A stretch of DNA of 64,000 nt from Anaeramoeba ignava BMAN. Its lineage: Eukaryota; Protista; Anaeramoebae. The notes below the pieces were generated by a model. It saw nothing but the letters and a program-made list of their open reading frames with translations. It was not told the origin of the DNA and searched no databases. Location: positions 1 to 64,000 of the forward strand of contig JAPDFW010000013.1 of assembly GCA_028826165.1 (NCBI GenBank), read 5' to 3'. The position numbers and the translations under genes were made by a program. Shown here piece by piece: positions 27,982 to 47,720 of the stretch (position 1 is the stretch's first letter; every line of letters starts with the position of its first letter).

Positions 27982-28226
27982 ATTATATTTTTTTTTTTTT
28001 TTGATTAAATTTGAAATAGAATTTAAATAAAAATTTGAAATTAAAAAAAAAAAAAGTGGAACAAAATTTTGAAAATAAATTTTGGAATAGAACTTGAAAT
28101 TTGAATAAATGTCAAGTAAATTCAAAAATTTAAAATGACTAAAAAAAAAAAATGTTAAAGAGAAAAATTATTTCAAATTATTTTTTTTTTTCATTTTTTT
28201 TTTAAATTTTTTCATTTCATTAAATT

Positions 28227-30068
28227 ATGTGGCAAGATATAAAAGCTATTCCAACAGATCTTGAAAAATTATTTTTTGCAAGTAAAGCAAGAATAATCAT
28301 ACCAGAAAAAATAACTGAAAATCCACTTGATGATCTTCAAAAACCACCAAAACAAAGAATATTTTTCGGACAACTTGTACATTTTTACATACATTTAAAA
28401 TGTCCCCAGAACATGGCATCAAGAGAAAAAGAGAAATGGGACCAATTACTGAATATGATCACTATTAAATCCCATATCAAAGCATCTTATAGAACATCCT
28501 CGGAAAAAATAGAATCACCAAGATCACCAAGACTTAAGACTCAAAAATCATTAACGGCCAAAAAAAAATCCAATTCGAAACTAATAAAAGATTCGGAAAA
28601 GAATAAAACCGCAATGAAAATGTTCACAAAATCGCAAGACTTGTCAGGAGACATGGGCAATATAACAAAACATCGAAGACATCTCTCGGATTACCGAACA
28701 AATTCATTTGATATTCTCAGTCCAAGCAAGTCTGAGAGGAATTTAGCCAAGCAAATAAAAACAAAATCAACTCGAGAGAAAAAATCTGCGCGCGAAGAAA
28801 ACCCAGCTCATTTGCTTGGTTTTAATAGCGAAACGCAGATTGAAAAACAAAACGAAACACACACAGAATTCCAGCTTTCAAATGGAGACTTTTTGATTGC
28901 ACGCTCGATTCGGGTTGTGCAAAATCTCTACGAATCTGAGCAACAGAATATCACAATAACAGCCAAAATTTATTTTTTAGAAAACAAACAAACAGAACTG
29001 TTTGGAAAATTAAGTGCCAAAGAACTGGAAAAAATGATCGGAATTTCTGAAAAAAAAGCATTTGGTCCATATGGTCCTAATCCCGAATTTGTGATCAGAA
29101 AAATCAACAAGCATCTTAGCGTTGATTTTCCGTTTAATTTAACCTCGTCGTTTTGTTCTTTTGGAAATTCAACAATGATCATGATTGTGATCGAGAATGT
29201 CCATAAAAACTCGGCGTTGGTTCTTCACAACCCAAAATTCCATTTGAATCCGAGTTTCCAATCGCGGTCTCCATTGGAAGACATGGAAGGAAACGAGGAA
29301 AACAAGAACAAACCAATTCCACAAAAAAGAATCAATTCTTTTCTTTTTGGAGAAGCGATGCAAATCCAGGAGCTTGTGGAACTTTTTTGTGTGAATGAAA
29401 TCCCGTCGAAAGACAAATCAATCAATATCAAATTTCTCAAACCCAACGAGAAAATGAGTCTTCTTTATCGCATCTCTCCAGTCTCATCCACACTTGTTGA
29501 TGATAGATATTTATATTTTCACGGAAAATTCACTTCTTTATTTACTGTTTCTTGGCAAATTACTCGCCAAAAAACCGCAATGAATATCGACCAATTCATG
29601 CAATTCCCTCAGAATATCTCAAAACACCAGATCCAATGGAAGAAGGAGCTTGTTTCCGATGTCCAGATCAAAATCAAAAATCCTCCTCTTGCAAATGCTT
29701 ATTCGCTTTTTGAGGTTCAAGTCGAAATTGTTAATAATGGCAAAAATTTTCGTGAATTTCAACTTAAAATTCCTTATTCAAAATTCTCATCAAATTTCGA
29801 ACAAAAAAATTTTCAACTGGCAAAAAAAAGTTCTTCTCAAAATGACAAAAAAATTTTTGATCAATTTCAGAACAATCTGAACCAACTTGAAATTGTTTGT
29901 CAAGAAAACTCCATTCATTTGATTATTCAAGCCAAAAGTTCTGTTTTTGTTAATCTTCATTTTATTGCTTTTAAAGTTGGGATTTGTGATATTTTTTTGG
30001 AATTGGTTGATTTGGGTTTATTACAACGATTAGTTGCTCAACAATCTTTTAAAATACAAATTTGTTGA
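28227..30068 (+). CDS. TRAPP II subunit-like protein (TRAPPC14/C7orf43-like)
   Basis: RIFFGQLVHFYIHL, LKPNEKMSLLYRI and a C-terminal Ig-like segment FEVQVEIVN..IVCQE..VNLHFIAFKVG resemble TRAPPC14/Trs65-type proteins. Recognised by eye. Confidence 0.6.
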   Translation: MWQDIKAIPTDLEKLFFASKARIIIPEKITENPLDDLQKPPKQRIFFGQLVHFYIHLKCPQNMASREKEKWDQLLNMITIKSHIKASYRTSSEKIESPRSPRLKTQKSLTAKKKSNSKLIKDSEKNKTAMKMFTKSQDLSGDMGNITKHRRHLSDYRTNSFDILSPSKSERNLAKQIKTKSTREKKSAREENPAHLLGFNSETQIEKQNETHTEFQLSNGDFLIARSIRVVQNLYESEQQNITITAKIYFLENKQTELFGKLSAKELEKMIGISEKKAFGPYGPNPEFVIRKINKHLSVDFPFNLTSSFCSFGNSTMIMIVIENVHKNSALVLHNPKFHLNPSFQSRSPLEDMEGNEENKNKPIPQKRINSFLFGEAMQIQELVELFCVNEIPSKDKSINIKFLKPNEKMSLLYRISPVSSTLVDDRYLYFHGKFTSLFTVSWQITRQKTAMNIDQFMQFPQNISKHQIQWKKELVSDVQIKIKNPPLANAYSLFEVQVEIVNNGKNFREFQLKIPYSKFSSNFEQKNFQLAKKSSSQNDKKIFDQFQNNLNQLEIVCQENSIHLIIQAKSSVFVNLHFIAFKVGICDIFLELVDLGLLQRLVAQQSFKIQIC

Positions 30069-30254
30069 TTTTTTTTCTTTTTTTTTTGAATAATTTAATT
30101 TTACAAATAAATTTTAAAATAAACTAAAAAGTGGAATGGAAAAAAAAATATTTATTTAAAAAATTAAACATTTTTCTTTTTTCTTTTGATTTTGATTATT
30201 AAATTTTTTAATTAATAAATCAAATAAATTTGGATTTCATCAATTATTTCTTTT

Positions 30255-32052
30255 TTAAAAAATTAAACATTTTTCTTTTTTCTTTTGATTTTGATTATTA
30301 AATTTTCCAGTTAATAAATCAAATAAATTTGGATTTGTTTGATTTAATTGAAAATAATCAATTCCTGTTTTAATTTCATCAATAATTTGTTGTGTAATTT
30401 GGATTTCTTCTTTAATTTGATTTGAATAAATCCAATATTCAAATATTTGAAATGATTTATTACTTAATTCACTATAATCTGTAACTTTATTAGAAGTATC
30501 ATCTTTTACAGATAAAAACATTCCTCGATATAATTCACTTCTCATTATTAATATTAATTTTGGAAATTTATATTGTTTTTCTTTTCTTTCAATTATAAAA
30601 TCATTTCTCATTTTCATTTTCATTTTCATTTAAATAAATTCTTTTCATTGTTTCTTCAATTTTTTCATTTGAATTTATAATTTCTTTAATTTCAGAATAT
30701 AATTTTGGATTTATAATTCTGTTTGAATAAATCATTTCAAATATTTGATTTGATTCTTTAATTGATTTATTTGAAATAATTTCTTGAAGTTTTTCAATTT
30801 CATTTTGATTTTGATTTAATCTATATTTCAATATTAATTTATGAGCTTCGATTATTTCTCCATTTTCGGTTTTAAATGAAATATTACAAAATTCTTTTCT
30901 TTCAAATAGTTTTATCAAATCTTCTTCAAGATTGGAAAAAGAAGGAGAATAATAAAGAAATGAATTACAATCTCCACAAGAAATATGATAATTAGAAATA
31001 TTTTCATTAAATCTTAATTTAGGAAGTTCAATTTGAAATGGAATAAATTGATTATTTATATCTCCAATTCCTAATTCACCATATAAATTATCTCCAAATC
31101 CAATTAATTTTGAATTGGAAGTTAAAATCAAACTATGAGAATCTCCACAAGAAAAATCAATAATATCATTATCATTTTCAAATAAAGATGATTTGATTTC
31201 AGTAAATTCATAAATATTTTCATATTCGTCTTTGCCAAGTCCATTATATTGATAATCACCACATGAATAAAGTTTTCTTTTTGGATTTTGATTTTCATTT
31301 TCAATCAACATTATTGAATGAAAATTTCCACATTGAATATCAATTATTTTACCTTTTGGAATATTTTGGATTTTGGTTAAGTTTTGGATTTTTCTTTCTT
31401 TTCTTGATTCTCCTAATCCAAGTTGAGCAGAATAATTATATCCACATCCAAATAATTCTTGATTTGAATTTAAAAGAAAAGCATAAAATGAGGTGTTTCC
31501 TGAAAATATTTTAGAAACATTTTTCATCATTAAAATTGGTTTTTTTGTTTTTTCAAATGTTTTAGAATCAAATCCAAGTTGATCATATCGATTTGAACCA
31601 ATTCCATAAGCATTTTGATTTGAAGTTAATAAGTAAATTGAACAAGCACCAGAAACAACATCTTGAATTATTTTATCATTTGTATCTTCAATTAATGATG
31701 AAATATTGATAAATTCTTTTGTATTTTTTGAATTAATATTTTCTCCTTTGGCAAATACATTTCCTTCTATTGTTAAAATAGCTTCATTTTGATAACCAAT
31801 AGTTACTTTTTGGATATTTTCAATTTGGATTTTTTTAGGTTTTTGACTTGAATATTCTATTGCTTTTCCATTTTTAAAAAGGAAAATTGTTGAATATCTT
31901 CCTGATGAAATTTGTTTAATTTGTTTTTCATTTTCATTTTCATTTTCATTTTCATTTTCAAATTTAAGTTGAATTGGTTTTGTTATTTTATTTGGTTCAT
32001 TTTTGATAAGTTTTGGATATTGGTTTTCACCAAAAAATAAACAATCATTCAT
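30255..32052 (-). CDS. RCC1-repeat plus BTB protein, array copy 1 (frameshift ~30610); ends KKKEKCLIF (CaaX)
   Basis: RCC1 blades (GxNxxxQLG, IQCGxxHS, FSCGxxHSLIL) then two BTB segments (IEAHKLIL; FPKLILIMRSELYRGMF). Confidence 0.85.
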
Positions 32053-32426
32053 TTTTGAAAAGAAAAAAAATGAAAAAAATATTTTTGGAACTTTATTTTT
32101 GATTTTAATTTTAATTTTGATTTTGATTTTAATTTTAATTTTAATTTTTGATTTTAATTTTAATTTTAATTTGTATTTTAATTTTAGTTTTAATTTTAAA
32201 TTTTAATTTTAATTTTAATTTTAATTTTGATTTTTAATTTTAATTTTAATTTTAATTTTAATTTTAATTTTAATTTTAATTTTAATTTTAATTTTAATTT
32301 TAATTTTAATTTTAATTTTAATTTTGATTATTAAATTTGTTAATTAATAAATCCAATAAATTTGGATTTGTTTGATTTAATTGAAAATAATCAATTCCAA
32401 TTTTAATTTCATTAATTATTTCTTTT

Positions 32427-34207
32427 TTAAAAAATTAAGCATTTTTCTTTCTTTTTTTGATTATTAAATTTGTTAATTAATAAATCAAATAAATTTGGGT
32501 TTGTTTGATTTAATTGAAAATAATCAATTCCAGTTTGAATTTCATTAATTATTTCTTTTGTAATTTGAATTCCATCTTTAATTTGATTTGAATAAATCCA
32601 ATATTCAAATATTTCAAATGATTTATTACTTAATTCACTATAATCTGTAACTTTATTAGAAGTATCATTTGTTACAGATAAAAACATTCCTCGATATAAT
32701 TCACTTCTCATTATTAATATTAATTTTGGAAATTTATATTGTTTTTCTTTTCTTTCAATTATAAAATCTTTTTCATTTTCATTTTCATTTAAATAAATTC
32801 TTTTCATTGTTTCTTCAATTTTTCATTTGAATTTATAATTTCTTTAATTTCAGAATATAATTTTGGATTTATTATTCTGTTTGAATAAATCATTTCAAAT
32901 ATTTGATTTGATTCTTTAATTGATTTTTTTGAAATAATTTCTTGAAGTTTTTCAATTTCATTTTGATTTTGATTTAATCTATATTTCAATATTAATTTAT
33001 GAGCTTCAATTATTTCTCCATTTTTGGTTTTAAATGAAATATTGCAAAATTCTTTTCTTCTAAATAATTTTATCAAATCTTCTTCAAGATTGGAAAAAGA
33101 AGGAGAATAATAAAGAAATGAATTACCATCTCCACAAGAAACATGATAATTAGAAATATTTTCATTAAATCTTAATTTAGGAAGTTCAATTTGAATTGGA
33201 ATTGATTGTTCTATTATATCTCCAGTTCCTAATTCACCATTTATATTATATCCAAATCCAATTAATTTCTTGGAAGTTAAAATCAAAGTATGTTGATATC
33301 CAACAGAAAAATCAAGAATATTATCATCATTTTCAAATAAAGATGATTTGATTTGAGTAAATTCATAAGTATCTTCATCTTTGCCAAGTCCATTAAATTC
33401 ATAATTTCCACATGAATAAAGTTTTCTTTTTGGATTTTCATTTTCATCTTCAATCAACATTATTGAATTAGATCCGCATTGAATATCAATTATTTTACCT
33501 TTTGGAATATTTTGAATTTTGGTTAATTTTTGGATTTTTGTTTCTTCTTTTCTTGATTCTCCTCCTAATCCAAGTTGAGCAAATTCATTATTTCCGCATC
33601 CAAATAATTCTTGATTTGAATTTAAAAGAAAAACAGAACTAGAATAATTTCCTGAAAATACTTTAGAAACATTTTTCATCATTAAAATTGGTTTTTCTGT
33701 TTTTTTCATTGTTTCAGAATCAAATCCAAGTTGACCATTTTCATTTGAACCAATTCCGTAAACATTTTGATTTGAAGTTAATAAGTAAATTGAACAAGCA
33801 CCAGAAACAATATCTTGAATTATTCTATCATTTGTATCTTCAATTAATGATGAAATATTAATAAATTCTTTTGGATTAATATTAAATCCTTTGGCAAATA
33901 CATTTCCTTCTATTGTTAAAATAGCTACATTTTCAGAACCAACAGTTACTTTTTGAATATTTTCTTCAATTTGGATTTTTTGAGGTTTTTGATATGAATC
34001 ATTTTCATTTAAATATTCTATTGCTTTTCCATTTTTAAAAAGGAAAATTGTTGAAAGACTTGATGATGAAATTTGTTTAATTTGTTTTTCATTTTCATTT
34101 TCATTTTCATTTTCAAATTTAAATTGAATTGGTTTTGTTATTGAATCTGGTTCATTTTTGATAAGTATTGGAAATTGATTTGCACCAAAAAATAAACAAT
34201 CATTCAT
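32427..34207 (-). CDS. RCC1-BTB protein, copy 2 (frameshift ~32820); ends KKKEKCLIF
   Basis: Paralogue of copy 1; one A missing in a homopolymer relative to the intact copies. Confidence 0.85.
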
Positions 34208-34555
34208 TTTTAAAAAGAAAAAAAATGAAAAAATGATTTGGAACTTTTTTATTTTAATTTTAATTTTAATTTTAATTTTGATTTTAATTTTAATTTTGAA
34301 TTTTAATTTAAATTTTATTTTTAATTTTAATTTTAATTTTAATTTTAATTTTAATTTTAATTTTAATTTTAATTTTAAATTTTAATTTTAATTTTAATTT
34401 TAATTTTGATTTAATTTTGATTTTAATTTTAATTTTAATTTTTAATTTTAATTTTAATTTTAATTTTAAATTTAATTTTAATTTTAATTTTAATTTTAAT
34501 TTTAATTTTAATTTTAATTTGTATTTTAATTTTAATTTTAATTTTAATTTTAATT

Positions 34556-36373
34556 TTAATTTTGATTATTAAATTTGTTAATTAATAAATCAAATAAATT
34601 TGGTTTTGTTTGATTTAATTGAAAATAATCAATTCCAATTTTAATTTCATTAATAATTTCTTGTGTAATTTGAATTTCATCTTTGATTTGATTTGAATAA
34701 ATCCAATATTCAAATATTTGAAATGCTTTATTACTTAATTCACTATAATCTGTAACTTTATTAGAAGTATCATTTGTTACGGATAAAAACATTCCTCGAT
34801 ATAATTCACTTCTCATTATTAATATTAATTTTGGGAATTTATATTGTTTTTCTTTTCTTTCAATTATAAAATCTTTCTCATTTTCATTTTCATTTTCATT
34901 TAAATAAATTCTTTTCATTGTTTCTTCTATTTTTTCATTTGAATTTATAATTTCTTTAATTTCAGAATATAATTTTGGATTTATAATTCTGTTTGAATAA
35001 ATCATTTCAAATATTTGATTTGATTCTTTAATTGATTTATTTGAAATAATTTCTTGAAGTTTTTCAATTTCATTTTGATTTTGATTTAATCTATATTTCA
35101 ATATTAATTTATGAGCTTCAATTATTTCTCCATTTTCTGTTTTAAATGAAATATTACAAAATTCTTTTCTTCTAAATAATTTTATCAAATCTTCTTCAAG
35201 ATTAGAAAAAGAGGAAAGAAAAGGAGAATAATAAAGAAATGATTTTGAAAATCCACAAGAAAGATGATAATTAGAAATATTTTCATTAAATCTTAATTTA
35301 GGAAGTTTGATTTGAATTGGAATTGATTGATAATTGAAATCTCCAATTCCTAATTGACCAGAATGATTACTTCCAAATACAATCAATTTTCTTTTGGAAG
35401 TTAAAATCAAAGTATGATCATATCCAACAGAAAAATCAAGAATAATATCATCATCATTTTCAAATAAAGATAATTCTATTTCAGTAAATTCATAAGTATT
35501 TTGAAACATTTTGTCAAATCCATTAAATTTATGATCTCCACATGAATAAAGTTTTCTTTTTGGATTTGGATTTTCATTTTCATTTTCAATCAGCATTATT
35601 GAATGAGAAAACCCACATTGAATATCAATTATTTTGCCTTTTGGAATATTTTGGATTTTGGTTAATTTTTGGATTTTTGTTTCTTCTTTTCTTGATTCTC
35701 CTAATCCAAGTTGGCCATATGCATTATTTCCACATCCAAATAATTCTTGATTTGAATTTAAAAGAAAAACATGATTTGAAGTATTTCCTGAAAATATTTT
35801 AGAAACATTTTTCATCATTAAAATTGGTTTTTCTGTTTTTTCAAGTGCTTCATAATCAAAACCAAGTTGATCATATCGATTTGAACCAATTCCATAAGCA
35901 TTTTGATTTGAAGTTAATAAGTAAATTGAATAAGCACCAGAAACAATATCTTGAATTATTCTATCATTTTTATCTTGAATTATTCTATCATTTTTATCTT
36001 CAATTAATGATGAAATATTGATAAATTCTTTTGGATTATTTGAATTGATATCTTCTCCTTTTGCAAATACATTTCCTTCTATTGTTAAAATAGCTTCATT
36101 TTCAGAACCAACAGTTACTTTTTGAATATTTTCAATTTGGATTTTTTCAGGATTTTGATTTGAATCATTTTCATTTAAATATTCTATTGCTTTTCCATTT
36201 TTAAAAAGGAAAATTGTTGAAAGACTTGATGTTGAAATTTGCTTAATTTGTTTTTCATTTTCATTTTCATTTTCATTTTCAAATTTAAATTGAATTGGTT
36301 TTGTTATTTCATTTGATTCATTTTTGAAAAGTTTTGGATATTGATTTTCACCAAAAAATAAACAATCATTCAT
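34556..36373 (-). CDS. RCC1-BTB protein, copy 3 (intact); ends FNNQN, no CaaX
   Basis: 605-aa ORF; includes an 8-aa internal duplication DKNDRIIQ. Confidence 0.9.
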   Translation of the reverse strand: MNDCLFFGENQYPKLFKNESNEITKPIQFKFENENENENEKQIKQISTSSLSTIFLFKNGKAIEYLNENDSNQNPEKIQIENIQKVTVGSENEAILTIEGNVFAKGEDINSNNPKEFINISSLIEDKNDRIIQDKNDRIIQDIVSGAYSIYLLTSNQNAYGIGSNRYDQLGFDYEALEKTEKPILMMKNVSKIFSGNTSNHVFLLNSNQELFGCGNNAYGQLGLGESRKEETKIQKLTKIQNIPKGKIIDIQCGFSHSIMLIENENENPNPKRKLYSCGDHKFNGFDKMFQNTYEFTEIELSLFENDDDIILDFSVGYDHTLILTSKRKLIVFGSNHSGQLGIGDFNYQSIPIQIKLPKLRFNENISNYHLSCGFSKSFLYYSPFLSSFSNLEEDLIKLFRRKEFCNISFKTENGEIIEAHKLILKYRLNQNQNEIEKLQEIISNKSIKESNQIFEMIYSNRIINPKLYSEIKEIINSNEKIEETMKRIYLNENENENEKDFIIERKEKQYKFPKLILIMRSELYRGMFLSVTNDTSNKVTDYSELSNKAFQIFEYWIYSNQIKDEIQITQEIINEIKIGIDYFQLNQTKPNLFDLLINKFNNQN

Positions 36374-36605
36374 TTTTGAAAAAGAAAAAAAATGAAAAAA
36401 ATATTTTTTTTGGAATTTTTATTTTAATTTTAATTTTAATTTTAATTTTAATTTTAATTTTTAATTTTAATTTTAATTTTAATTTTAATTTTAATTTTTA
36501 ATTTTAATTTTAATTTTAATTTTAATTTTAATTTTAATTTTAATTTTAATTTTAATTTTAATTTTAATTTTGATTTTAATTTTAATTTTAATTTTAATTT
36601 TAATT

Positions 36606-38379
36606 TTAATTTTGATTATTAAATTTGTTAGTTAATAAATCAAATAAATTTGGATTTGTTTGATTTAATTGAAAATAATCAATTCCAATTTGAATTTCAT
36701 CAATTATTTCTTGTGTAATTTGAATTTCATCTTTAATTTGATTTGAATAAATCCAATATTCAAATATTTGAAATGATTTATTACTTAATTCACTATAATC
36801 TGTAACTTTATTAGATTTATCTTCTGTTACAGATAAAAACATTCCTCGATATAATTCACTTCTCATTATTAATATTAATTTTGGAAATTTATATTGTTTT
36901 TCTTTTCTTTCAATAATAAAATCTTTTTCATTTTCATTTTCATTTTCATTTAAATAAATTCTTTTCATTGTTTCTTCAATTTTTTCATTTGAATTTATAA
37001 TTTCTTTAATTTCAGAATATAATTTTGGATTTATTTTGGAATTGTTTGAATAAATCATTTCAAATATTTGATTTGATTCTTTAATTGATTTTTGAAATAA
37101 TTTCTTGAAGTTTTTCAATTTGATTTTCATAATCTTTTAATCTATATTTCAATATTAATTTATGAGCTTCAATTATTTCTCCATTTTCGGTTTTAAATGA
37201 AATATCACAAAATTCTTTTCTTCTAAATAATTTTATCAAATCTTCTTCAAGATTGGAAAAAGAAGGAGAATAATAAAGAAATGAATTATAAACTCCACAA
37301 TGAACATGATAATTAGAAATATTTTCATTAAATCTTAATTTAGGAAGTTCAATTTGAGTTGGAATCGGTTTATATTCTGTATCTCCAGTTCCTAATTCAC
37401 CATTTATATTTCTTCCAAATCCAATCAATTTCCCTTTTTCGGTTAAGATTAAAGTATTTTCATATCCAACAGAAAAATCAAGAATATTATCATCATTTTC
37501 AAATAAAGATGATTTGATTTCAAAAAAAGATGTGAGATATTCAGTTTGGCTATTTCCATTGAATTGAGGTTCACCACACGAATAAAGTTTTCTTTTTGGA
37601 TTTTGATTTTGATTTTCATCTTCAATTTCAATCAACATAACTGAATGCCAATTTCCTGTTTGAATATCAATTATTTTACCTTTTGGAATATTTTGGATTT
37701 TGGTTAATTCTTTCATATTTTCTTCTTCTGTTTCTTTTATTTCTAATCCAACTTGACCATAGCAATTATATCCACATCCAAATAATTCTTGATTTGAATT
37801 TAAAAGAAAAACAGAATAAGAAGGAATTCCTGAAAATATTTTAGAAACATTTTTCATCATTAAAATTGGTTTTTCTGTTTTTTTAAATGTTTCAGAATCA
37901 AAACCAAGTTGAGCAAAAAAATTTGAACCAATTCCATAAGCATTTTGATTTGAAGTTAATAAGTAAATTGAATTATATCCAGAAACAACATCTTGAATTA
38001 TTCTATCATTTGTATCTTCAATTAATGATGAAATATTGATAAATTCTTTTGGATTTTTTGGATTAATATCTTTTCCTTTGGCAAATACATTTCCTTCTAT
38101 TGTTAAAATAGCTTCATTTTGAACACCAACAGTTACTTTTTGAATATTTTCAATTTGGATTTTTTGAAGATTTTGTTTTGAATCATTTTGATTTAAATAT
38201 TCTATTGCTTTTCCATTTTTAAAAAGGAAAATTGTTGAAAAATAACCTGATGCAATTTGTTTAATTTGTTTTTCATTTTCATTTTCAAATTTAAATTGAA
38301 TTGGTTTTGTTATTTTATTTGGTTTATTTTTGATAAGTATTGGATATTGATTTAAACCAAAAAATAAGCAATCATTCAT
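36606..38379 (-). CDS. RCC1-BTB protein, copy 4 (frameshift ~37090); no CaaX
   Basis: ORFs 37081-38379 and 36606-37130; A-run shorter than in the paralogues. Confidence 0.85.
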
Positions 38380-38639
38380 TTTTGAAAAGAAAAAAATGAA
38401 AAAATAATTTTGAATTTTAATTTTAATTTTAATTTTAATTTTAATTTTAATTTTAATTTTAATTTTAATTTTAATTTTGATTTTAATTTTAATTTTAATT
38501 TTAATTTTAATTTTAATTTTAATTTTGATTTTAATTTTGATTATTAAATTTGTTAATTAATAAATCCAATAAATTTGGATTTGTTTGATTTAATTGAAAA
38601 TAATCAATTCCTCTTTTAATTTCATTAATAATTTCTTTT

Positions 38640-40432
38640 TTAAAAAATTAAGCATTTTTCTTTCTTTTGATTTTGATTATTAAATTTGTTAATTAATAAA
38701 TCAAATAAATTTGGATTTGTTTGATTTAATTGAAAATAATCAATTCCAATTTGAATTTCATCAATTATTTCTTGTGTAATTTGAATTTCTTCTTTAATTT
38801 GATTTGAATAAATCCAATATTCAAATATTTCAAATGATTTATTACTTAATTCACTATAATCTGTAACTTTATTAGAAGTATCATCTTTTACAGATAAAAA
38901 CATTCCTCGATATAATTCACTTCTCATTATTAATATTAATTTTGGAAATTTATATTGTTTTTCTTTTCTTTCAATTATAAAATCTTTTTCATTTTCATTT
39001 TCATTTTCATTTAAATAAATTCTTTTCATTGTTTCTTCAATTTTTCATTTAAATTTATAATTTCTTTAATTTCAGAATATAATTTTGGATTTATTATTCT
39101 GTTTGAATAAATCATTTCAAATATTTGATTTGATTTTTTAATTGATTTTTTTGAAATAATTTCTTGAAGTTTTTCAATTTGATTTTGATTTTGATTTAAT
39201 CTATATTTCAATATTAATTTATGAGCTTCAATTATTTCTCCATTTTTGGTTTTAAATGAAATATCACAAAATTCTTTTCTTTCAAATAATTTTATCAAAT
39301 CTTCTTCAAGATTGGAAAAAGGAGAAGAATAATAAAGAAATGAATTACCATATCCACAAGAAACATGATAATTAGAAATATTTTCATTAAATCTTAATTT
39401 AGGAAGTTCAATTTGGATTGGAATTGATTGTTTTATGAAATCTCCAGTTCCTAATTCACCAAAAAAATTATCTCCAAATCCAATTAATTTCCCTTTTGAT
39501 GTTAAAATCAAAGTATGTTGATATCCAACAGAAAAATCAAGAATATTATCATCATTTTCAAATAAAGATGATTTGATTTCAGTAAATTCATAAATATCTT
39601 CATATATTTTGCCAAGTCCATTAGATCGATAATCTCCACATGAATAAAGTTTTCTTTTTGGATTTTCATTTTCATCTTCAATCAACATTACTGAATTAGA
39701 TCCGCATTGAATATCAATTATTTTGCCTTTTGGAATATTTTGAATTTTGGTTAATTTTTGGATTTTTGTTTCTTCTTTTCTTGATTCTCCTAATCCAAGT
39801 TGAGCAAATTCATTATATCCGCATCCAAATAATTCTTGATTTGAATTTAAAAGAAAAACATGATTTGAATAATTTCCTGAAAATATTTTAGAAACATTTT
39901 TCATCATTAAAATTGGTTTTTCTGTTTTTTTAAGTGTTTCAGAATCAAAAGCAAGTTGACCGTTATGATTTGAACCAATTCCATAAGTATTTTGATTTGA
40001 AGTTAATAAGTAAATTGAACAAACACCAGAAACAATATCTTGAATTATTCTATCATTTGTATCTTCAATTAATGATGAAATATTAATAAATTCTTTTGGA
40101 TTTTTTGGATTAATATCAATTCCTTTGGCAAATACATTTCCTTCTTTTGTTAAAATAGCTACATTGTGAGAGCTAACAGTTACTTTTTGAATATTTTCAA
40201 TTTGGATTTTTTGAGGTTTTTGATATGAATCATTTTCTTCTAAATATTGGATTGCTTTTCCATTTTTAAAAAGGAAAATTGTTGAGAAATAACCTGATGA
40301 AATTTGTTTAATTTGTTTTTCATTTTCATTTTCATTTTCAAATTTAAATTGAATTGGTTTTGTTATTGAATCTATTTCATTTTTGATAAGTATTGGAAAT
40401 TGATTTGAACCAAAAAATAAGCAATCATTCAT
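38640..40432 (-). CDS. RCC1-BTB protein, copy 5 (frameshift ~39043); ends QKKEKCLIF
   Basis: ORFs 39026-40432 and 38640-39029; closest to copy 2. Confidence 0.85.
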
Positions 40433-40686
40433 TTTTGAAAAGAAAAAAATGAAAAAATGATTTTGCTTTTTATTTTAATTTTAATTTTAATTTTAATTTT
40501 AATTTTAATTTTAATTTTGATTTTAATTTTAATTTTAATTTTAATTTTAATTTTAATTTTAATTTTAATTTTAATTTTAATTTTAATTTTAATTTTAATT
40601 TTAATTTTAATTTTAATTTTAATTTTAATTTTGATTTTAATTTTAATTTTAATTTTTAATTTTTGATTTTGATTTTAATTTTAATT

Positions 40687-42465
40687 TTAATTTTGATTAT
40701 TAAATTTGTTAATTAATAAATCAAATAAATTTGGGTTTGTTTGATTTAATTGAAAATAATCAATTCCTGTTTGGATTTCATCAATAATTTCTTGTGTAAT
40801 TTGAATTTCATCTTTAATTTGATTTGAATAAATCCAATATTCAAATATTTGAAATGATTTATTACTTAATTCACTATAATCTGTAACTTTATTTGATTTA
40901 TCTTCTGTTACAGATAAAAACATTCCTCGATATAATTCACTTCTCATTATTAATATTAATTTTGGAAATTTATATTGTTTTTCTTTTCTTTCAATAATAA
41001 AATCTTTTTCATTTTCATTTTCATTTAAATAAATTCTTTTCATTGTTTCTTCAATTTTTTCATTTGAATTTATAATTTCTTTAATTTCAGAATATAATAT
41101 TGGATTTATTATTCTGTTTGAATAAATCATTTCAAATATTTGATTTGATTCTTTAATTGATTTTTTTGAAATAATTTCTTGAAGTTTATCAATTTGATTT
41201 TCTTGATTTTGATTTAATCTATATTTCAATATTAATTTATGAGCTTCAATTATTTCTCCATTTTCGGTTTTAAATGAAATATTACAAAATTCTTTTCTTT
41301 CAAATAATTTTATCAAATCTTCTTCAAGATTGGAAAAAGAAGGAGGAGAATAATAAATAAATGAACTAAATCCTCCACAAGAAACATGATAATTGGAAAC
41401 ATCTTCATTAAATCTTAATTCAGGAAGTTCAGTTTGGAATGGAATTGATGTATAACTGTAATCTCCAGTTCCTAATTGACCAGAATAATTACTGCCAAAT
41501 ACTATTAGTTTTGAATTTGAAGTTAAAATCAAAGTATGTGCATATCCAACAGAAAAATCAAGAATATTATCATCATTTTCAAATAAAGATGATTTGATTT
41601 CAGTAAATTCATAAATATTTTCATCTTTGCCAAGTCCATTAAATTTATGATCTCCACATGAATAAAGTTTTCTTTTTGGATTTTGATTTTCATCTTCATC
41701 TTCAATCAACATTATTGAATGAGAATATCCGCATTGAATACCAATTATTTTGCCTTTTGGAATATTTTGGATTTTGGTTAAATTTCGGATATATGCTTCT
41801 TTTCTTGATTCTCCTAATCCAAGTTGGCCAAATTGATTATCACCACATCCAAATAATTCTTGATTTGAATTTAAAAGAAAAACATGATTAGAATAGTTTC
41901 CTGAAAATATTTTAGAAACATTTTTCATCATTAAAATTGGTTTTTCTGTTTTTTTAAGTGTTTCAGAATCAAAACCAAGTTGATCATATCGGTTTGAACC
42001 AATTCCATAAGCATTTTGATTTGAAGTTAATAAGTAAATTGAATTTCTTCCAGAAACAATATCTTGAATTATTCTATCATTTGTATCTTCAATTAATGAT
42101 GAAATATTGATAAATTCTTTTGGATTATTTGAATTGATATCATATCCTTTTGCAAATACATTTCCTTCTTTTGTTAAAATAGCTTCATTTCCAGAACCAA
42201 CAGTTACTTTTTGAATATTTTCTTCAATTTGGATTTTTGAAGGATTTTGATTTGAATCATGGAGATATTCTATTGCTTTTCCATTTTTAAAAAGGAAAAT
42301 TGTTGAGAAACTTGATGATGAAATTTGTTTAATTTGATTTTCATTTTCATTTTCATTTTCATTTTCATTTTCAAATTTAAATTGAATTGGTTTTGTTATT
42401 TTATTTGGTTCATTTTTGATAAGTATTGGATATTCATTTTGACCAAAAAATAAACAATCATTCAT
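40687..42465 (-). CDS. RCC1-BTB protein, copy 6 (intact); no CaaX
   Basis: 592-aa ORF. Confidence 0.9.
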   Translation of the reverse strand: MNDCLFFGQNEYPILIKNEPNKITKPIQFKFENENENENENENQIKQISSSSFSTIFLFKNGKAIEYLHDSNQNPSKIQIEENIQKVTVGSGNEAILTKEGNVFAKGYDINSNNPKEFINISSLIEDTNDRIIQDIVSGRNSIYLLTSNQNAYGIGSNRYDQLGFDSETLKKTEKPILMMKNVSKIFSGNYSNHVFLLNSNQELFGCGDNQFGQLGLGESRKEAYIRNLTKIQNIPKGKIIGIQCGYSHSIMLIEDEDENQNPKRKLYSCGDHKFNGLGKDENIYEFTEIKSSLFENDDNILDFSVGYAHTLILTSNSKLIVFGSNYSGQLGTGDYSYTSIPFQTELPELRFNEDVSNYHVSCGGFSSFIYYSPPSFSNLEEDLIKLFERKEFCNISFKTENGEIIEAHKLILKYRLNQNQENQIDKLQEIISKKSIKESNQIFEMIYSNRIINPILYSEIKEIINSNEKIEETMKRIYLNENENEKDFIIERKEKQYKFPKLILIMRSELYRGMFLSVTEDKSNKVTDYSELSNKSFQIFEYWIYSNQIKDEIQITQEIIDEIQTGIDYFQLNQTNPNLFDLLINKFNNQN

Positions 42466-42798
42466 TTTTGAAAAGAAAAAAATGAAAAAATGATTTTTGG
42501 AACTTTTTTATTTTAATTTTAATTTTAATTTTAATTTTAATTTTAATTTTAATTTTAATTTTGATTTTAATTTTAATTTTAATTTTAATTTTAATTTTAA
42601 TTTTGATTTTAATTTTAATTTTAATTTTAATTTTAATTTTAATTTTGATTTTAATTTTAATTTTAATTTTAATTTTTAATTTTAATTTTAATTTTAATTT
42701 TAATTTTAATTTTAATTTTAATTTTTAATTTTTGATTTTAATTTTTAATTTTAATTTTAATTTTAATTTTAATTTTAATTTTAATTTTAATTTTAATT

Positions 42799-44607
42799 TT
42801 AATTTTGATTTTGATTATTAAATTTATTAATTAATAAATCAAATAAATTTGGATTTGTTTGATTTAATTGAAAATAATCAATTCCAATTTGAATTTCATT
42901 AATTATTTCTTGTGTAATTTCAATTTCATTTTTAATTTGATTTGAATAAATCCAATATTCAAATATTTGAAATGATTTATTACTTAATTCACTATAATCT
43001 GTAACTTTATTTGATTTATCATTTGTTACAGATAAAAACATTCCTCGATATAATTCACTTCTCATTATTAATATTAATTTTGGAAATTTATATTGTTTTT
43101 CTTTTCTTTCAATAATAAAATCTTTTTCATTTTCATTTTCATTTTCATTTTCATTTTCATTTAAATAAATTCTTTTCATTGTTTCTTCAATTTTTTCATT
43201 TGAATTTATAATTTCTTTAATTTCTGAATATAATATTGGATTTATTTTGGAATTATTTGAATAAATCATTTCAAATATTTGATTAGATTCTTTAATTGAT
43301 TTTGTTGAAATAATTTCTTGAAGTTTTTCAATTTGATTTTCATCTTTTAATCTATATTTCAATATTAATTTATGAGCTTTGATTATTTCTCCATTTTCGG
43401 TTTTAAATGAAATATCACAAAATTCTTTTCTTCTAAATAATTTTATCAAATCTTCTTCAAGATTGGAAAAAGAGGAAAGAAAAGGAGAATAATAAAGAAA
43501 TGAATTATAATATCCACAAGAAATATGATAATTGAAAATATCTTCATTAAATCTTAATTTAGGAAGTTCAATTTGAAATGGAATTGATTGATAATTTGTA
43601 TCTCCAGTTCCTAATTGTCCATAATAATTACTGCCAAATCCTATTAATTTTGAATTGGAAGTTAAAATTAAAGTATGAGCTCTTCCAACAGAAAAATCAA
43701 GAATATTATCATTTTCAAATAAAGATGATTTGATTTCAGTAAATCCATAAGTATCTTCATCTTCATTTTTCCCAAGTCCATTATATTGAGAATATCCACA
43801 TGAATAAAGTTTTCTTTTTGGATTTGGATTTTCATCTTCATTTTCAATCAAAATTATTGAATGAGAATATCCACATTGAATACCAATTATTTTGCCTTTT
43901 GGAATATTTTGGATTTTGGTTAATTTTTGGATTTTTTCTTCTTTTCTTGATTCTCCTAATCCAAGTTGACCATATCTATTATCACCGCATCCAAATAATT
44001 CTTGATTTGAATTTAAAAGAAAAATTGAATTTGAGAAAATTCCTGAAAATATTTTAGAAACATTTTTCATCATTAAAATTGGTTTTTCTGTTTTTTTAAG
44101 TGTTTCATAATCAAAACCAAGTTGATCATATCGATTTGAACCAATTCCATAAGCATTTTGATTTGAAGTTAATAAGTAAATTGAATGAGCTCCAGAAACA
44201 ATATCTTGAATTATTCTATCATTTTTATCTTCAATTAATGATGAAATATTAATAAATTCATTTGGATTTTCTGAATCAATATATTCTCCTTTGGCAAATA
44301 CATTTCCTTCTATTGTTAAAATAGCTTCATTTTCAGAACCAACAGTTACTTTTTGAATATTTTCAATTTGGATTTTTGAAGGATTTTGATTTGATTCTTG
44401 GAGATATTCTATTGCTTTTCCATTTTCAAAAAGGAAAATTATTGAAAACCCTGATGAAATTTGTTTAATTTGATTTTCATTTTCATTTTCATTTTCATTT
44501 TCATTTTCATTTTCAAATTTAAATTGAATTGGTTTTGTTATTATATCTTGTTCATTTTTGATAAGTTTTGGATATTTATTTTCACCAAAAAATAAACAAT
44601 CATTCAT
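42799..44607 (-). CDS. RCC1-BTB protein, copy 7 (intact); no CaaX
   Basis: 602-aa ORF. Confidence 0.9.
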   Translation of the reverse strand: MNDCLFFGENKYPKLIKNEQDIITKPIQFKFENENENENENENENQIKQISSGFSIIFLFENGKAIEYLQESNQNPSKIQIENIQKVTVGSENEAILTIEGNVFAKGEYIDSENPNEFINISSLIEDKNDRIIQDIVSGAHSIYLLTSNQNAYGIGSNRYDQLGFDYETLKKTEKPILMMKNVSKIFSGIFSNSIFLLNSNQELFGCGDNRYGQLGLGESRKEEKIQKLTKIQNIPKGKIIGIQCGYSHSIILIENEDENPNPKRKLYSCGYSQYNGLGKNEDEDTYGFTEIKSSLFENDNILDFSVGRAHTLILTSNSKLIGFGSNYYGQLGTGDTNYQSIPFQIELPKLRFNEDIFNYHISCGYYNSFLYYSPFLSSFSNLEEDLIKLFRRKEFCDISFKTENGEIIKAHKLILKYRLKDENQIEKLQEIISTKSIKESNQIFEMIYSNNSKINPILYSEIKEIINSNEKIEETMKRIYLNENENENENENEKDFIIERKEKQYKFPKLILIMRSELYRGMFLSVTNDKSNKVTDYSELSNKSFQIFEYWIYSNQIKNEIEITQEIINEIQIGIDYFQLNQTNPNLFDLLINKFNNQNQN

Positions 44608-44973
44608 TTTTAAAAAGAAAAAAAAATTATTTTTGAAAAATTTATTTTTGGAATTTTAATTTTAATTTTAATTTTGATTTTAATTTTAATTTTAATTTTA
44701 ATTTTAATTTTAATTTTAATTTTAATTTTAATTTTAATTTTAATTTTAATTTTAATTTTAATTTTAATTTTAATTTTAATTTTAATTTTAATTTTAATTT
44801 AAATTTAATTTTAATTTTTAATAAAATTTTAAAATTTTAATTTTTTTAATTTGTTTGATTTATTTTAATTGAAAATAATCAGTTTAAATTTTAATTTTGA
44901 TTATTAAATTTGTTAATTAATAAATGTTTCTTTGATTTAATTTTAATTTCAATTTCATCTTTATTATTTGATT

Positions 44974-46632
44974 TCAATTTTTAATTTGATTTGAATAAAT
45001 CCAATATTCAAATATTTGAAATGATTCTTCACTTAATTCACTATAATCTGTAACTTTGTTAGAAGTATCATCTTTTACAGATAAAAACATTCCTCGATAT
45101 AATTCACTTCTCATTATCAATATTAATTTTGGAAATTTATATTGTTTTTCTTTTCTTTCAATTATAAAATCTTTTTCATTTTCATTTAAATAAATTCTTT
45201 TCATTGTTTCTTCAATTTTTTCATTTAAATTTATAATTTCTTTAATTTCAGAATATAATTTTGGATTTATAATTCTGTTTGAATAAATCATTTCAAATAT
45301 TTGATTAGATTCTTTAATTGATTTTTTTGAAATAATTTCTTGAAGTTTTTCAATTTGATTTTGATTTTGATTTTGATTTAATCTATATTTTAATATTAAT
45401 TTATGAGCTTTGATTATTTCTCCATTTTTGGTTTTAAATGAAATATCACAAAATTCTTTTCTTCTAAATAGTTTTATCAAATCTTCTTCAAGATTGGAAA
45501 AAGAAGGAGAAGAATAATAAAGAAATGAATTTTCATATCCACAAGAAAGATGATAATTAGATATATCAATATTATCGGTCAATAGTAATTTAGGAATCTT
45601 TCCTTTCACAGGAATTGAATGTTCTTTTGTATCTCTAGTCCCTAATTGGCCAAACTGATTATCTCCGAATCCTATTAATTTCCCTTTGGAAGTTAAAATC
45701 AAAGTATGAGCTCTTCCAACAGAAAAATCAAGAATATCATCATCATTTTCAAATAAAGATGATTTGATTTCAGTAAATTCTCTTGTATCTTCATTTTTGC
45801 CAAGTCCATTATAATGACAATTTCCACATGAATAAATTTTTCTTTTTGGATTTTCATTTTGATTTTCATTTTCAATTAACATTATTGAATAAGCATGCCC
45901 ACATTTAATATCAATTATTTTGCCTTTTGGAATATTTTGGATTTTGGTTATCTCTCCAGTTATTGGTTGGGGTGTTCTTCCTAATCCAAGTTGGCCAAAA
46001 TAATTATATCCGCATCCAAATAATTCTTGATTTGAATTCAAAAGAAAAACTGAATTTATAAAACTTCCTGAAAATATTTTAGAAACATTTTTCATCATTA
46101 AAATTGGTTTTTCTCTTTTTTTACCCCAAACTTCAGTATCACATCCAATTTGACCATATTGATTTGAACCAAAGCCATAAGCATTTTGATTTGAAGTTAA
46201 TAAATAAATTGTTTCAGAACCAAAAACAATATCTTGAATTATTCTATCATTTGGATCTTCAATTAATGATGAAATATTAATAAATTGATACAGGTTTTTT
46301 TGGTCGATATTTTCGCCTTTTGCAAATACATTTCCTTCTATTGTTAAAATAGCTTCATTTCTATAAAATCCTACAGTTACTTTTCGAATATTTTCAATTT
46401 GGATTTTTCTTGCATTTTGTTTTGATTCTTTTAAATATTTAATTGCTTTTCCATTTTTAAAAAGGAAAATTGTTGCAAAACTTGATGATGAAATTTGTTT
46501 AATTTGTTTTTCATTTTCATTTTCATTTTCATTTTCAAAATTAAATTGAATTGATTTTTTTATTATTTCTTTTGTTTCATTTTGTAAAAGTTTTGGAAAT
46601 TTATTCCAACCAAAAAAGAAATTTTGATTCAT
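44974..46632 (-). CDS. RCC1-BTB protein, copy 8 (most divergent; C-terminally truncated)
   Basis: 552-aa ORF stops at YSNQIKN*, with scrambled tail remnants downstream. Confidence 0.8.
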   Translation of the reverse strand: MNQNFFFGWNKFPKLLQNETKEIIKKSIQFNFENENENENEKQIKQISSSSFATIFLFKNGKAIKYLKESKQNARKIQIENIRKVTVGFYRNEAILTIEGNVFAKGENIDQKNLYQFINISSLIEDPNDRIIQDIVFGSETIYLLTSNQNAYGFGSNQYGQIGCDTEVWGKKREKPILMMKNVSKIFSGSFINSVFLLNSNQELFGCGYNYFGQLGLGRTPQPITGEITKIQNIPKGKIIDIKCGHAYSIMLIENENQNENPKRKIYSCGNCHYNGLGKNEDTREFTEIKSSLFENDDDILDFSVGRAHTLILTSKGKLIGFGDNQFGQLGTRDTKEHSIPVKGKIPKLLLTDNIDISNYHLSCGYENSFLYYSSPSFSNLEEDLIKLFRRKEFCDISFKTKNGEIIKAHKLILKYRLNQNQNQNQIEKLQEIISKKSIKESNQIFEMIYSNRIINPKLYSEIKEIINLNEKIEETMKRIYLNENEKDFIIERKEKQYKFPKLILIMRSELYRGMFLSVKDDTSNKVTDYSELSEESFQIFEYWIYSNQIKN

Positions 46633-46707: not shown

Positions 46708-47055
46708 TCATTTGAAGAAATCATTCGCAGTTTTGACTCCTTTCACCACATCTCCAATCAGAGAAAGCCATTTTCCAGGATCTTTATTTCCTGAACAGTT
46801 TGTCCGATTTCCACATTCTCGAGCTTCATATCCACAATATTCACAAATTACTTTCCAACTTTTTCCATCAGATGATTCGTAATAATGGAAATAATGATGT
46901 CCTCGAATGTCAGTGTTTAGCTTCACTTTATTGTTTCCTGAACATTGTGATTTGTTTTTGCAATCTTTTTGTCGCCAGCCACAATGAGTACAAAGAACAA
47001 CATCTCCTTCTTTTTCACTTGGAAATGGAACAAAATTATGTCGACCTCTTGACAT
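46708..47055 (-). CDS. Small (115 aa) protein with two His/Cys repeats (putative Zn fingers) and an amphipathic C-terminal helix
   Basis: MSRGRHNF..VLCTHCG..C..CSGN / RGHHYF..VICEYCG..C..CSGN; GC higher than the flanks. Confidence 0.7.
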   Translation of the reverse strand: MSRGRHNFVPFPSEKEGDVVLCTHCGWRQKDCKNKSQCSGNNKVKLNTDIRGHHYFHYYESSDGKSWKVICEYCGYEARECGNRTNCSGNKDPGKWLSLIGDVVKGVKTANDFFK

Positions 47056-47164
47056 CTTTAAATCAAAATTAAAAAAATAATCAAAAAAAAAATGAACTAA
47101 CAAAAAAAACAAAAAGATCTTTTTAAACTCTTTTTTTTCCTTTTTTCCCTTTTTTTTAAAAAAT

Positions 47165-47720
47165 AAAATAAGGAATATTAAATAATTAACTTTAAAATCA
47201 ATTTTAATTTATATATTTATGAATATTTATTTATTTAAATTAATATAAAGTTATTCCCAATAATTTAATAAAATTAATTAAATATTTTAATCAAATTTAT
47301 TTCAAAAATAGAATAAGGAATATTAAGTAATTAAATTTAAAATAAATTTTAATTTGTATATTTATGAATATTTATTTATTTAAATTAATATAAAGTTATT
47401 CCCAATAATTTAATAAAATTAATTAAATATTTTAATCAAATTTATTTCAAAAATAAAATAAGGAATATTAAGTAATTACCTTTAAAATCAATTTTAATTT
47501 ATATATTCATGAATATTTATTTATTTAAATTAATATAAAGTTATTCCCAATAATTTAATAAAATTAATTAAATATTTTAATCAAATTTATTTAAAAATAA
47601 AAATAAATAATAATAAATAATTAAATTTAAAATCAATTTTAATTTATATATTTATGAATATTTATTTATTTAAATTAATATAAAGTTATTCCCAATAATT
47701 TAATAAAATTAATAAAAATA
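47165..47720. repeat. ~146-bp AT-rich tandem repeat (4 units) 3' of a TLDc gene
   Basis: 'taaagttattcccaataatttaataaaatt' recurs at ~146-bp spacing; related to the 4230 and 6460 arrays. Confidence 0.85.

Follow-up and report, generated by a model that had tools for sequence, protein, structure and literature searches.

The stretch of DNA analyzed here (the window; 64,000 nucleotides (nt), positions 1 to 64,000 of contig JAPDFW010000013.1 in assembly GCA_028826165.1 of Anaeramoeba ignava BMAN) has a G+C content of about 19%. At 30255-46632 it carries, on the minus strand, eight head-to-tail genes, c1 to c8, of the RCC1-propeller/BTB/BTB family. Three of them, c1, c2 and c5, end in a polybasic stretch followed by a CaaX motif (cysteine, two aliphatic residues, X), and behind the stop codon of each of these three lies a second, untranslated copy of the end of the gene. 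The initial annotation of the locus had read this spare tail as a cassette that may toggle the CaaX signal among the paralogues. Here the anatomy, the distribution and the probable origin of the spare tail are described.

When the array proteins were compared with Pfam, matches to RCC1, RCC1_2, WD40_RLD and BTB were obtained, arranged as an RCC1-type propeller followed by two BTB stretches (residues about 385-470 and about 495-592). The RCC1 matches have E values of 1e-20 to 1e-26 and the BTB matches of 1e-8 to 1e-10; the WD40_RLD scores of 127-143 bits stay under that model's own 150-bit cut-off. The closest solved structures are RCC1-type propellers, namely UVR8, RPGR, HERC1 and RCC1. A word-based protein search returned at least 772 related gene models, and every named one is from A. 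ignava, under names such as 'regulator of chromosome condensation', 'claret' and 'btk-binding protein-related'. The six-frame search of the 42.8-Mb assembly of the species itself yielded 2,875 first-look candidates, and all 72 scored full-length matches were 82-88% identical. No record was returned when c3 was searched against the encoding contigs of other genomes, with its own genome excluded. The main text of the genome paper mentions neither RCC1 nor BTB (PMC11550330).

Three genes of the array are intact and CaaX-less: c3 (34556-36373, 605 aa), c6 (40687-42465, 592 aa) and c7 (42799-44607, 602 aa). The CaaX-type genes c1 (30255-32052, with overlapping ORFs (open reading frames) at 30601-32052 and 30255-30629), c2 (32427-34207) and c5 (38640-40432), as well as the CaaX-less c4 (36606-38379), are each broken into two overlapping ORFs by one frameshift. 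The most divergent copy, c8 (44974-46632, 552 aa), has a degenerate tail and an early TGA stop. Every spacer of the array is filled by a microsatellite, (AAAATT)n, of 190-330 bp (32092-32338, 34246-34576, 36414-36626, 38405-38551, 40467-40707, 42505-42826 and 44652-44844). In the CaaX-less genes, as seen in c3, the downstream microsatellite supplies the TAA stop with its first AAT-TAA unit, derived from an AAT-CAA unit encoding NQ; tail lengths therefore vary (FNN, FNNQN, FNNQNQN). Frame-shifted readings of the microsatellite yield KIKIKI ends in some annotated proteins.

The terminal ORFs bear out the distribution of ends given in the initial annotation. c3, c4 and c6 end in FNNQN and c7 in FNNQNQN, each directly before the stop, whereas c1, c2 and c5 end in FNNQ(NQ)KK(K)EKCLIF, i.e. 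a polybasic stretch followed by CLIF. In c1 the stop codon is at 30255-30257 and the terminal residues are ...FNNQNQKKKEKCLIF; the corresponding stops and residues are 32427-32429 and ...FNNQKKKEKCLIF for c2, and 38640-38642 and ...FNNQNQKKEKCLIF for c5. Each CaaX stop is followed by a spacer, AAAA, and then by GAAAT[A/T]ATT..., the beginning of a second copy of the last approximately 100 bp of the gene, which lies +1 off the frame of the stop. The out-of-frame second tail and the common TAA-AAAA-GAA junction were thus correctly described, and so were the differing ends of the three spare tails. The real tail of c1 (tail A, minus strand as are all the following, 30255-30389) encodes QIIDEIKTGIDYFQLNQTNPNLFDLLTGKFNNQNQKKKEKCLIF and the stop; behind it come the spacer at 30251-30254 and the spare tail at 30156-30250 (together 30156-30254). 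In c2 the real tail (32427-32555, EIINEIQTGIDY...FNNQKKKEKCLIF and stop) is followed by the spacer at 32423-32426 and the spare tail at 32318-32422 (together 32318-32426), and in c5 the real tail (38640-38771, EIIDEIQIGIDY...FNNQNQKKEKCLIF and stop) by the spacer at 38636-38639 and the spare tail at 38531-38635 (together 38531-38639). Tandem Repeats Finder reports the same structures at 30155-30336 (period 99 bp, 96% matches), 32322-32563 (period 133 bp, 95% matches) and 38529-38773 (period 136 bp, 93% matches), respectively.

Read in its own frame, the spare tail of c2 encodes EIINEIKIGIDYFQLNQTNPNLLDLLINKFNNQN and a stop, and that of c5 is identical except for KR in place of KI. Both are therefore complete, ordinary CaaX-less endings of the form EIINEIK[I/R]GIDYFQLNQTNPNLLDLLINKFNNQN, and they merge into the (AAAATT)n stretches at 32092-32338 and 38405-38551, respectively. 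The spare tail of c1 has a 40-nt internal deletion, carries the CaaX-coding string at its end once more, in line with the shortened CaaX ending noted before, and then runs into unique 3' flank without microsatellite. We also considered alternative splicing to the spare tail. A GT splice donor was sought in the last 200 nt and the spacer of c2 and c5, and none was found; c1 has a single GT in its last 200 nt, inside the Cys codon. Thus none of the three genes has a GT upstream of the first stop that could be joined in frame to the spare tail as an alternative 3' exon, and the absence of a donor together with a unit length that is not a multiple of three rules this explanation out.

The census beyond the window was based on genome-wide pattern-match tables together with the letters of 30 other loci and of the window. 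The CaaX-coding 21-mer, with up to one mismatch allowed, is found at 135 genomic sites, as opposed to 0 for the reversed control, and these sites lie mostly about 2 kb apart, in arrays. A 28-mer covering the junction (from the Cys codon to the stop, four bases and GAAAT.ATT) matches 49 times on 20 contigs, again versus 0 in the control, so that the duplicated-tail pattern is present far beyond chance. At the 49 junctions the stop is followed by ACAA in 23 cases, by AAAA in 17 and by ATAA in 9. These variants differ by one base, and the AAAA form is common to the window and contigs C27, C35, C44, C52, C106 and C126. The ACAA variant is closest to the parental sequence ...ATTACACAAGAAAT..., and because a copy of that sequence would give ACAA-GAAAT, this is likely to be the original junction and the AAAA of the window a derived form. 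One fixed breakpoint at dozens of dispersed loci therefore points to a single duplication that would have been inherited as the family amplified.

Several loci contain more than one CaaX-bearing unit. On C71 (73848-76032) two CaaX strings lie 139 nt apart with the junction after each, which amounts to at least three units; pairs 56 nt apart are found on C35 (277227-277303) and C44 (42611-42687), and clusters on C126 (816056-816355) and C133 (51312-51929). Altogether these loci hold two or three CaaX strings at distances of 56-211 nt, in some of them with the common junction after every string, and c1 belongs to this double-CaaX type. The repeat therefore appears to be a unit of about 135 bp that carries the CaaX itself and comprises 34 codons, the polybasic-CaaX segment, the stop and 1-4 nt. 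As judged from the pattern-match positions of the multi-CaaX loci, the tail unit resembles a small minisatellite in its behaviour, since its copy number varies and internal deletions occur.

The initial annotation had further proposed that recombination between the two tandem tails deletes the CaaX, and that CaaX-less genes should accordingly carry the single-nucleotide polymorphisms (SNPs) of the spare tails. To this end, 47 distinct real tails and three complete spare tails, taken from the window and from 27 loci elsewhere, were compared. The relics of c2 and c5 carry TTATTG where all 47 real tails have TTATTT (NLFDLL, changed to NLLDLL in the relics). This relic-private variant occurs in 0 of the 47 real tails, a comparison that uses one SNP and 44 CaaX-less ends. 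The relic of L009, which lies on another contig and has become fused in frame to its gene, also has the G of TTATTG. Because this variant is shared by the relics of c2, c5 and L009 and absent from every real tail sampled, the relic lineage appears to be marked and the relic to be inherited. The spare tails of c2 and c5 differ at 3 of 97 nt, in line with the synonymous divergence (dS) of 0.03-0.07 between the two genes.

The tail of c3 had been reported to match the spare tail of c2 exactly over one stretch. This holds for the protein, since EIINEIKIGIDY of c3 is also encoded by the c2 spare tail, but not for the DNA of that segment, where 1 nt differs. Over the whole comparison c3 and the c2 relic are identical at 94 of 97 positions, while tails on other contigs reach 95 of 97, and the NEIKIG variant of c3 is present in 3 of the 47 real tails. 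Thus the match is not diagnostic, and a derivation of c3 by pop-out from a c2-like gene is unsupported, as tails of other contigs match the c2 relic as well or better.

Other routes of CaaX loss can be seen directly. At L020, where CAA has changed to TAA at two codons of the NQ repeat, the string ...KKKENCLIF still follows in frame; this end is the only one of 44 scanned non-CaaX ends with a hidden CaaX downstream of the stop. At L009 and L027 the stop and the frame offset were lost via indels and the ORF continues into the relic, giving the annotated ends ...KKFNQTNPNLLNLLINKFNNQN (P0012) and ...PFLEKEIIKIKIKN (P0024), respectively. Furthermore, the relic of L008 is shortened by the microsatellite, and at L006 a longer linker precedes a relic that is CaaX-less. 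The documented CaaX losses went by nonsense change or indels.

The distribution of the CaaX end over the family was followed on a tree of 120 gene bodies, cut at DYF so as to leave out the tail, with 18 CaaX rows. The CaaX label needs 15 changes on this tree; shuffled labels need 17 on average. Well-supported branches force at least four of these changes, and three starred sister pairs differ in their CaaX state. Two clean clades of CaaX and non-CaaX genes, the outcome that had been named as refuting a toggle, are excluded by this tree. Within the window the CaaX states are congruent with the tree, (c1,(c2,c5)) versus (c3,(c6,c7)). Across the family, the CaaX state is labile: close paralogues have repeatedly gained or lost the signal, and they have done so along several simple mutational routes. 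Of the toggle idea as a whole, the alternation of CaaX and CaaX-less ends among close paralogues therefore stands; the role of the spare tail as the switching agent is not supported.

The window copies themselves had been suggested as a source of membrane-anchored and soluble versions of one putative Cullin-3 adaptor. In the nucleotide alignment of the eight genes all indels are multiples of three except for the frameshifts in c1, c2, c4 and c5. c1 has one extra T at about 30603 (alignment column 1566, in c1 only), c2 has lost one A from an A6 run at about 32823, c5 has lost the same A at about 39045, and c4 has lost two A from an A7 run at about 37092. Three of the four are changes in the length of A runs, a typical leftover error of R9-nanopore assemblies. 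The assembly was made from R9-era nanopore reads and polished with Racon, Nanopolish and Pilon (PMC11550330), and homopolymer errors are therefore a real possibility for the array frameshifts. The annotation abounds in short C-terminal fragment models of the family, which form 65 clusters, some of them with 20-53 members. Since many family members are broken in the current nanopore-based assembly, copy numbers and pseudogene fractions should be quoted with caution.

For c2 and c5 the evidence leans towards a real change. They form a sister pair (support 99, starred) and are the only copies with A5; the chance that two random hits among eight copies land on the sister pair is 1 in 28. Their BTB halves differ by 3 synonymous and 17 non-synonymous changes (omega 1.2), as opposed to 43 and 63, respectively, in the intact pairs (omega 0.2-0.4; Fisher p = 0.04 against c2-c5). 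Because it is shared by sister copies with a neutrally evolving BTB half, the c2/c5 frameshift is probably real and inherited and not an assembly error, and c2 and c5 are probably dead genes. With c1, c2 and c5 frameshifted upstream of the tail and constraint relaxed in c2 and c5, these copies are therefore unlikely to be what produces an anchored and a soluble version.

The CaaX signal as such is credible. The terminal ORFs of c1, c2 and c5 have Cys at position -4, two aliphatic residues and F as X (L or F being expected), although in none of the three does the motif stand at the end of a continuous domain-bearing ORF. Intact CaaX-ending models of 600-606 aa, with a Lys-rich stretch before CLIF/CSIF, exist elsewhere in the family (for example P0103 and P0048, of 600-605 aa). 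CLIF or CSIF ends 15 of 112 full-length family models (about 13%) and 9 of 65 listed fragment models. F or L at X characterizes the geranylgeranyltransferase-I class, and a Rho4-like protein of A. ignava, P0122, ends in KKKKCILL. The genome has three loci over the cut-off for the prenyltransferase beta subunit (PF00432), three to four for the alpha subunit (PF01239), five Rce1-like loci and three ICMT loci for CaaX processing. In the PANTHER table of the genome paper, M0811 genes of A. ignava appear under both the alpha and the GGT-beta families (PMC11550330). A. ignava encodes the prenylation machinery, and the CaaX end of the family is a plausible geranylgeranylation signal; that family members are actually prenylated is what we infer from it. 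No transcriptome-derived (EukProt) family member with a CaaX tail was found among the 185 matches listed, which is no proof of silence, and a full-text literature search for RCC1, BTB and CaaX together gave nothing relevant.

One gene model on another contig of the genome, P0106 (NCBI 'rho-related protein racc', 728 aa), joins an RCC1-BTB body, spliced just before CLIF, to a downstream atypical Rho. The Rho part has a polybasic end and no CaaX, and alone it is a complete 216-aa transcriptome ORF (P0121); the fusion is probably an artefact of gene prediction. Capture of the CaaX from a Rho gene, for which P0106 had been the lead, was rejected, as the Rho is separately complete and lacks a CaaX. 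The CLIF codons and the start of the next gene (MNDCLFFG; TGC TTA TTT TTT) show only a 6+6-nt resemblance, in a genome of 19% G+C.

When these results are taken together, we consider it probable that the spare tail is an inherited neutral relic of one old, small tandem duplication and not a reserve cassette or a switch. According to this explanation, a unit of about 135 bp (the last 34 codons of the second BTB, the polybasic-CaaX segment, the stop and 1-4 nt) would have been duplicated once in tandem in a CaaX sub-lineage. Since each further copy starts after a stop and the unit length is not divisible by three, copies beyond the first would be untranslated 3' flank. Amplification of the host genes would then have spread the two-tail architecture to about 49 loci on 20 contigs, while the junction may have drifted from TAA-ACAA-GAAAT to TAA-ATAA- and to the TAA-AAAA- form of the window. 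Relics would decay by internal microhomology deletions, as in c1, by truncation through the microsatellite and by occasional indels that fuse the relic in frame. In the relics of c2 and c5 the distal CaaX part would have been lost or replaced by an FNNQN/(AAAATT)n end; the simplest route would be an exchange with the CaaX-less tail of a neighbour. That the duplication inside a CaaX gene came first, and that the relics are neutral, is deduced from the present forms. Several points weigh against this explanation. The body tree is star-like, with 51 of 117 branches unsupported, so that the count of changes is approximate; about 86 CaaX ends without the canonical junction lie outside the inspected set; the census of relic states is small, with five to seven cases; a traceless pop-out downstream of the diagnostic SNP would escape the TTATTG comparison; and the order of events is a deduction, while a different origin of the spare tail yields the form seen in c2 and c5 directly.

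That different origin is an illegitimate or unequal exchange at the microhomology CAAGAAAT, by which a CaaX paralogue would have donated its 3' end, made up of the tail, the CaaX, the stop and one further base, to a place ahead of a recipient's own tail; the spare tail would then be the original, displaced end of the gene and CaaX-less from the start. The relics of c2 and c5, which are complete ordinary ends with an ordinary microsatellite behind them, fit this well, the relic of L006 is CaaX-less too, and the majority of the family has no CaaX. However, the loci with two or three CaaX units and the same junction after each (C71, C35, C44 and c1) would need extra steps, and the c1 relic ends in CaaX and unique flank without microsatellite. 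We regard this origin as not very likely, though worth keeping in mind. We hold it to be less likely still that homologous deletion between the tandem tails has, over evolutionary time, been a major route from CaaX to CaaX-less ends and thus to soluble versions. The two direct repeats, of about 100 bp with 93-95% identity and a 30-bp gap, lend themselves well to deletion, sister genes repeatedly differ in CaaX state, and a deletion in c2 or c5 would produce exactly the ordinary FNNQN end with its microsatellite. Against this stand the missing TTATTG in the real tails, the even closer tails found on other contigs and the NEIKIG variant discussed above, the CaaX losses seen to have gone by other routes, and the two-tail architecture still present at about 49 loci. 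Moreover, a pop-out at double-CaaX loci changes nothing, and a pop-out is irreversible and hence one-way, so that it cannot make the toggle originally proposed. The mechanism put forward in the initial annotation is chemically possible, but it does not correspond to what is seen in the data.

A programmed or somatic switch, or alternative mRNA processing by which one gene would make both an anchored and a soluble protein, has nothing direct in its favour apart from the suggestive tandem of two alternative ends, and we consider it very improbable. It would call for an intact, exchangeable silent copy and a reversible change, whereas the relics lie +1 out of frame behind the stop and are deleted, truncated or substituted; c2 and c5 lack a donor, their units of 133 and 136 bp are not multiples of three, and all three CaaX copies of the window are frameshifted upstream. 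That the duplications are artefacts of the assembly has practically no credit with us. The R9-era reads (PMC11550330) make homopolymer errors plausible, and these could explain some of the frameshifts, but the two units are 4-7% divergent and unequal in length, as many as 49 loci share the structure, their junction variants fall into consistent groups, and derived forms are translated in annotated proteins (the tails of P0012 and P0024). An assembly artefact as the cause of the duplication is ruled out by these 49 loci, the diverged units and the translated derivatives. A more far-reaching idea is that the RCC1-BTB repertoire is deliberately partitioned between membrane and cytosol, the 3' end being a fast module that flips individual receptors between geranylgeranylated and soluble forms well above the rate of point mutation, as a germline contingency. 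We think this quite doubtful. It is equally doubtful that the conceivable ingredients, namely changes in the number of the approximately 135-bp units, CAA/TAA changes, slippage in NQ/(AAAATT)n and exchange of tails with neighbours, make up such a module. The inherited, neutral relic of a single duplication remains the explanation that we favour.

The spare tail and the gene family can be compared with known systems. Partial tandem duplications of a 3' end, which arise ordinarily by slippage or unequal exchange, have a minisatellite-like unit and leave an untranslated relic, are likewise arranged head to tail with one fixed junction and two to three units at some loci, and likewise only the first unit is in frame while later units decay. 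In contrast to ordinary cases, the amplification of a gene family has brought the relic described here to about 49 loci, and the unit bears a localization signal, so that its gain, loss or fusion alters the protein end. The likeness to silent-cassette or phase-variable loci, with an expressed end beside an unexpressed alternative and microsatellites at the gene end, is superficial: there is no sign of reversibility, of an in-frame silent cassette or of dedicated recombination sites, and, unlike in phase variation, the hexamer microsatellite leaves the frame unchanged. In the polybasic-CaaX anchors of Rho and Ras GTPases such as Rac1 and K-Ras4B, a Lys-rich stretch likewise precedes Cys-aliphatic-aliphatic-X at the extreme C-terminus, but in A. 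ignava the motif stands on a BTB adaptor-like protein and not on a GTPase, and the window copies that carry it have broken ORFs ahead of it. Animal RCBTB1/RCBTB2 and IBtk, the latter with two BTB domains, also have an RCC1-like seven-blade propeller followed by BTB domain(s). The A. ignava family differs from them in its size (at least 772 models in one genome, not one to three genes) and in having no ankyrin repeats. To our knowledge, a polybasic-CaaX end is not known from RCBTB or IBtk.

Some further features of the array and its surroundings were recorded. Between array copies, the ratio of non-synonymous to synonymous substitution rates (dN/dS) is 0.7-1.4 in the propeller half and 0.2-0.4 in the BTB half of intact pairs. 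The propeller of c3 contains an in-frame 24-nt tandem duplication (35947-36006, KNDRIIQD twice). Upstream of the array lies a 134-aa Cys-rich ORF (46708-47112) in which the motif C..CG...C.N...CSGN is repeated and for which no more than a weak zinc-ribbon match was obtained, and beside it a 145-bp tandem repeat with 2.4 copies (47151-47500). Convergent to c1, a 799-aa ankyrin-repeat gene and a 613-aa ORF without Pfam match occupy 25272-30068; their G+C content of 31-36% is well over the 19% of the array.

In itself, the stranded second tail is molecular debris of an ordinary kind, and demonstrating this averts its over-reading as a switch. The broader point stands: this giant family has repeatedly changed between a lipid-anchor end and a plain one, and about one in eight members of the very large, hypervariable RCC1-BTB family carries a credible geranylgeranylation signal. 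A role as cullin-3 substrate adaptor is known or proposed for BTB proteins of the RCC1-BTB layout, and the A. ignava genome contains cullin genes. If family members are indeed recognition adaptors of ubiquitin ligases, the tail would set whether a given specificity acts at the membrane or in the cytosol, and the membranes in question would include the symbiosome network in this amoeba.

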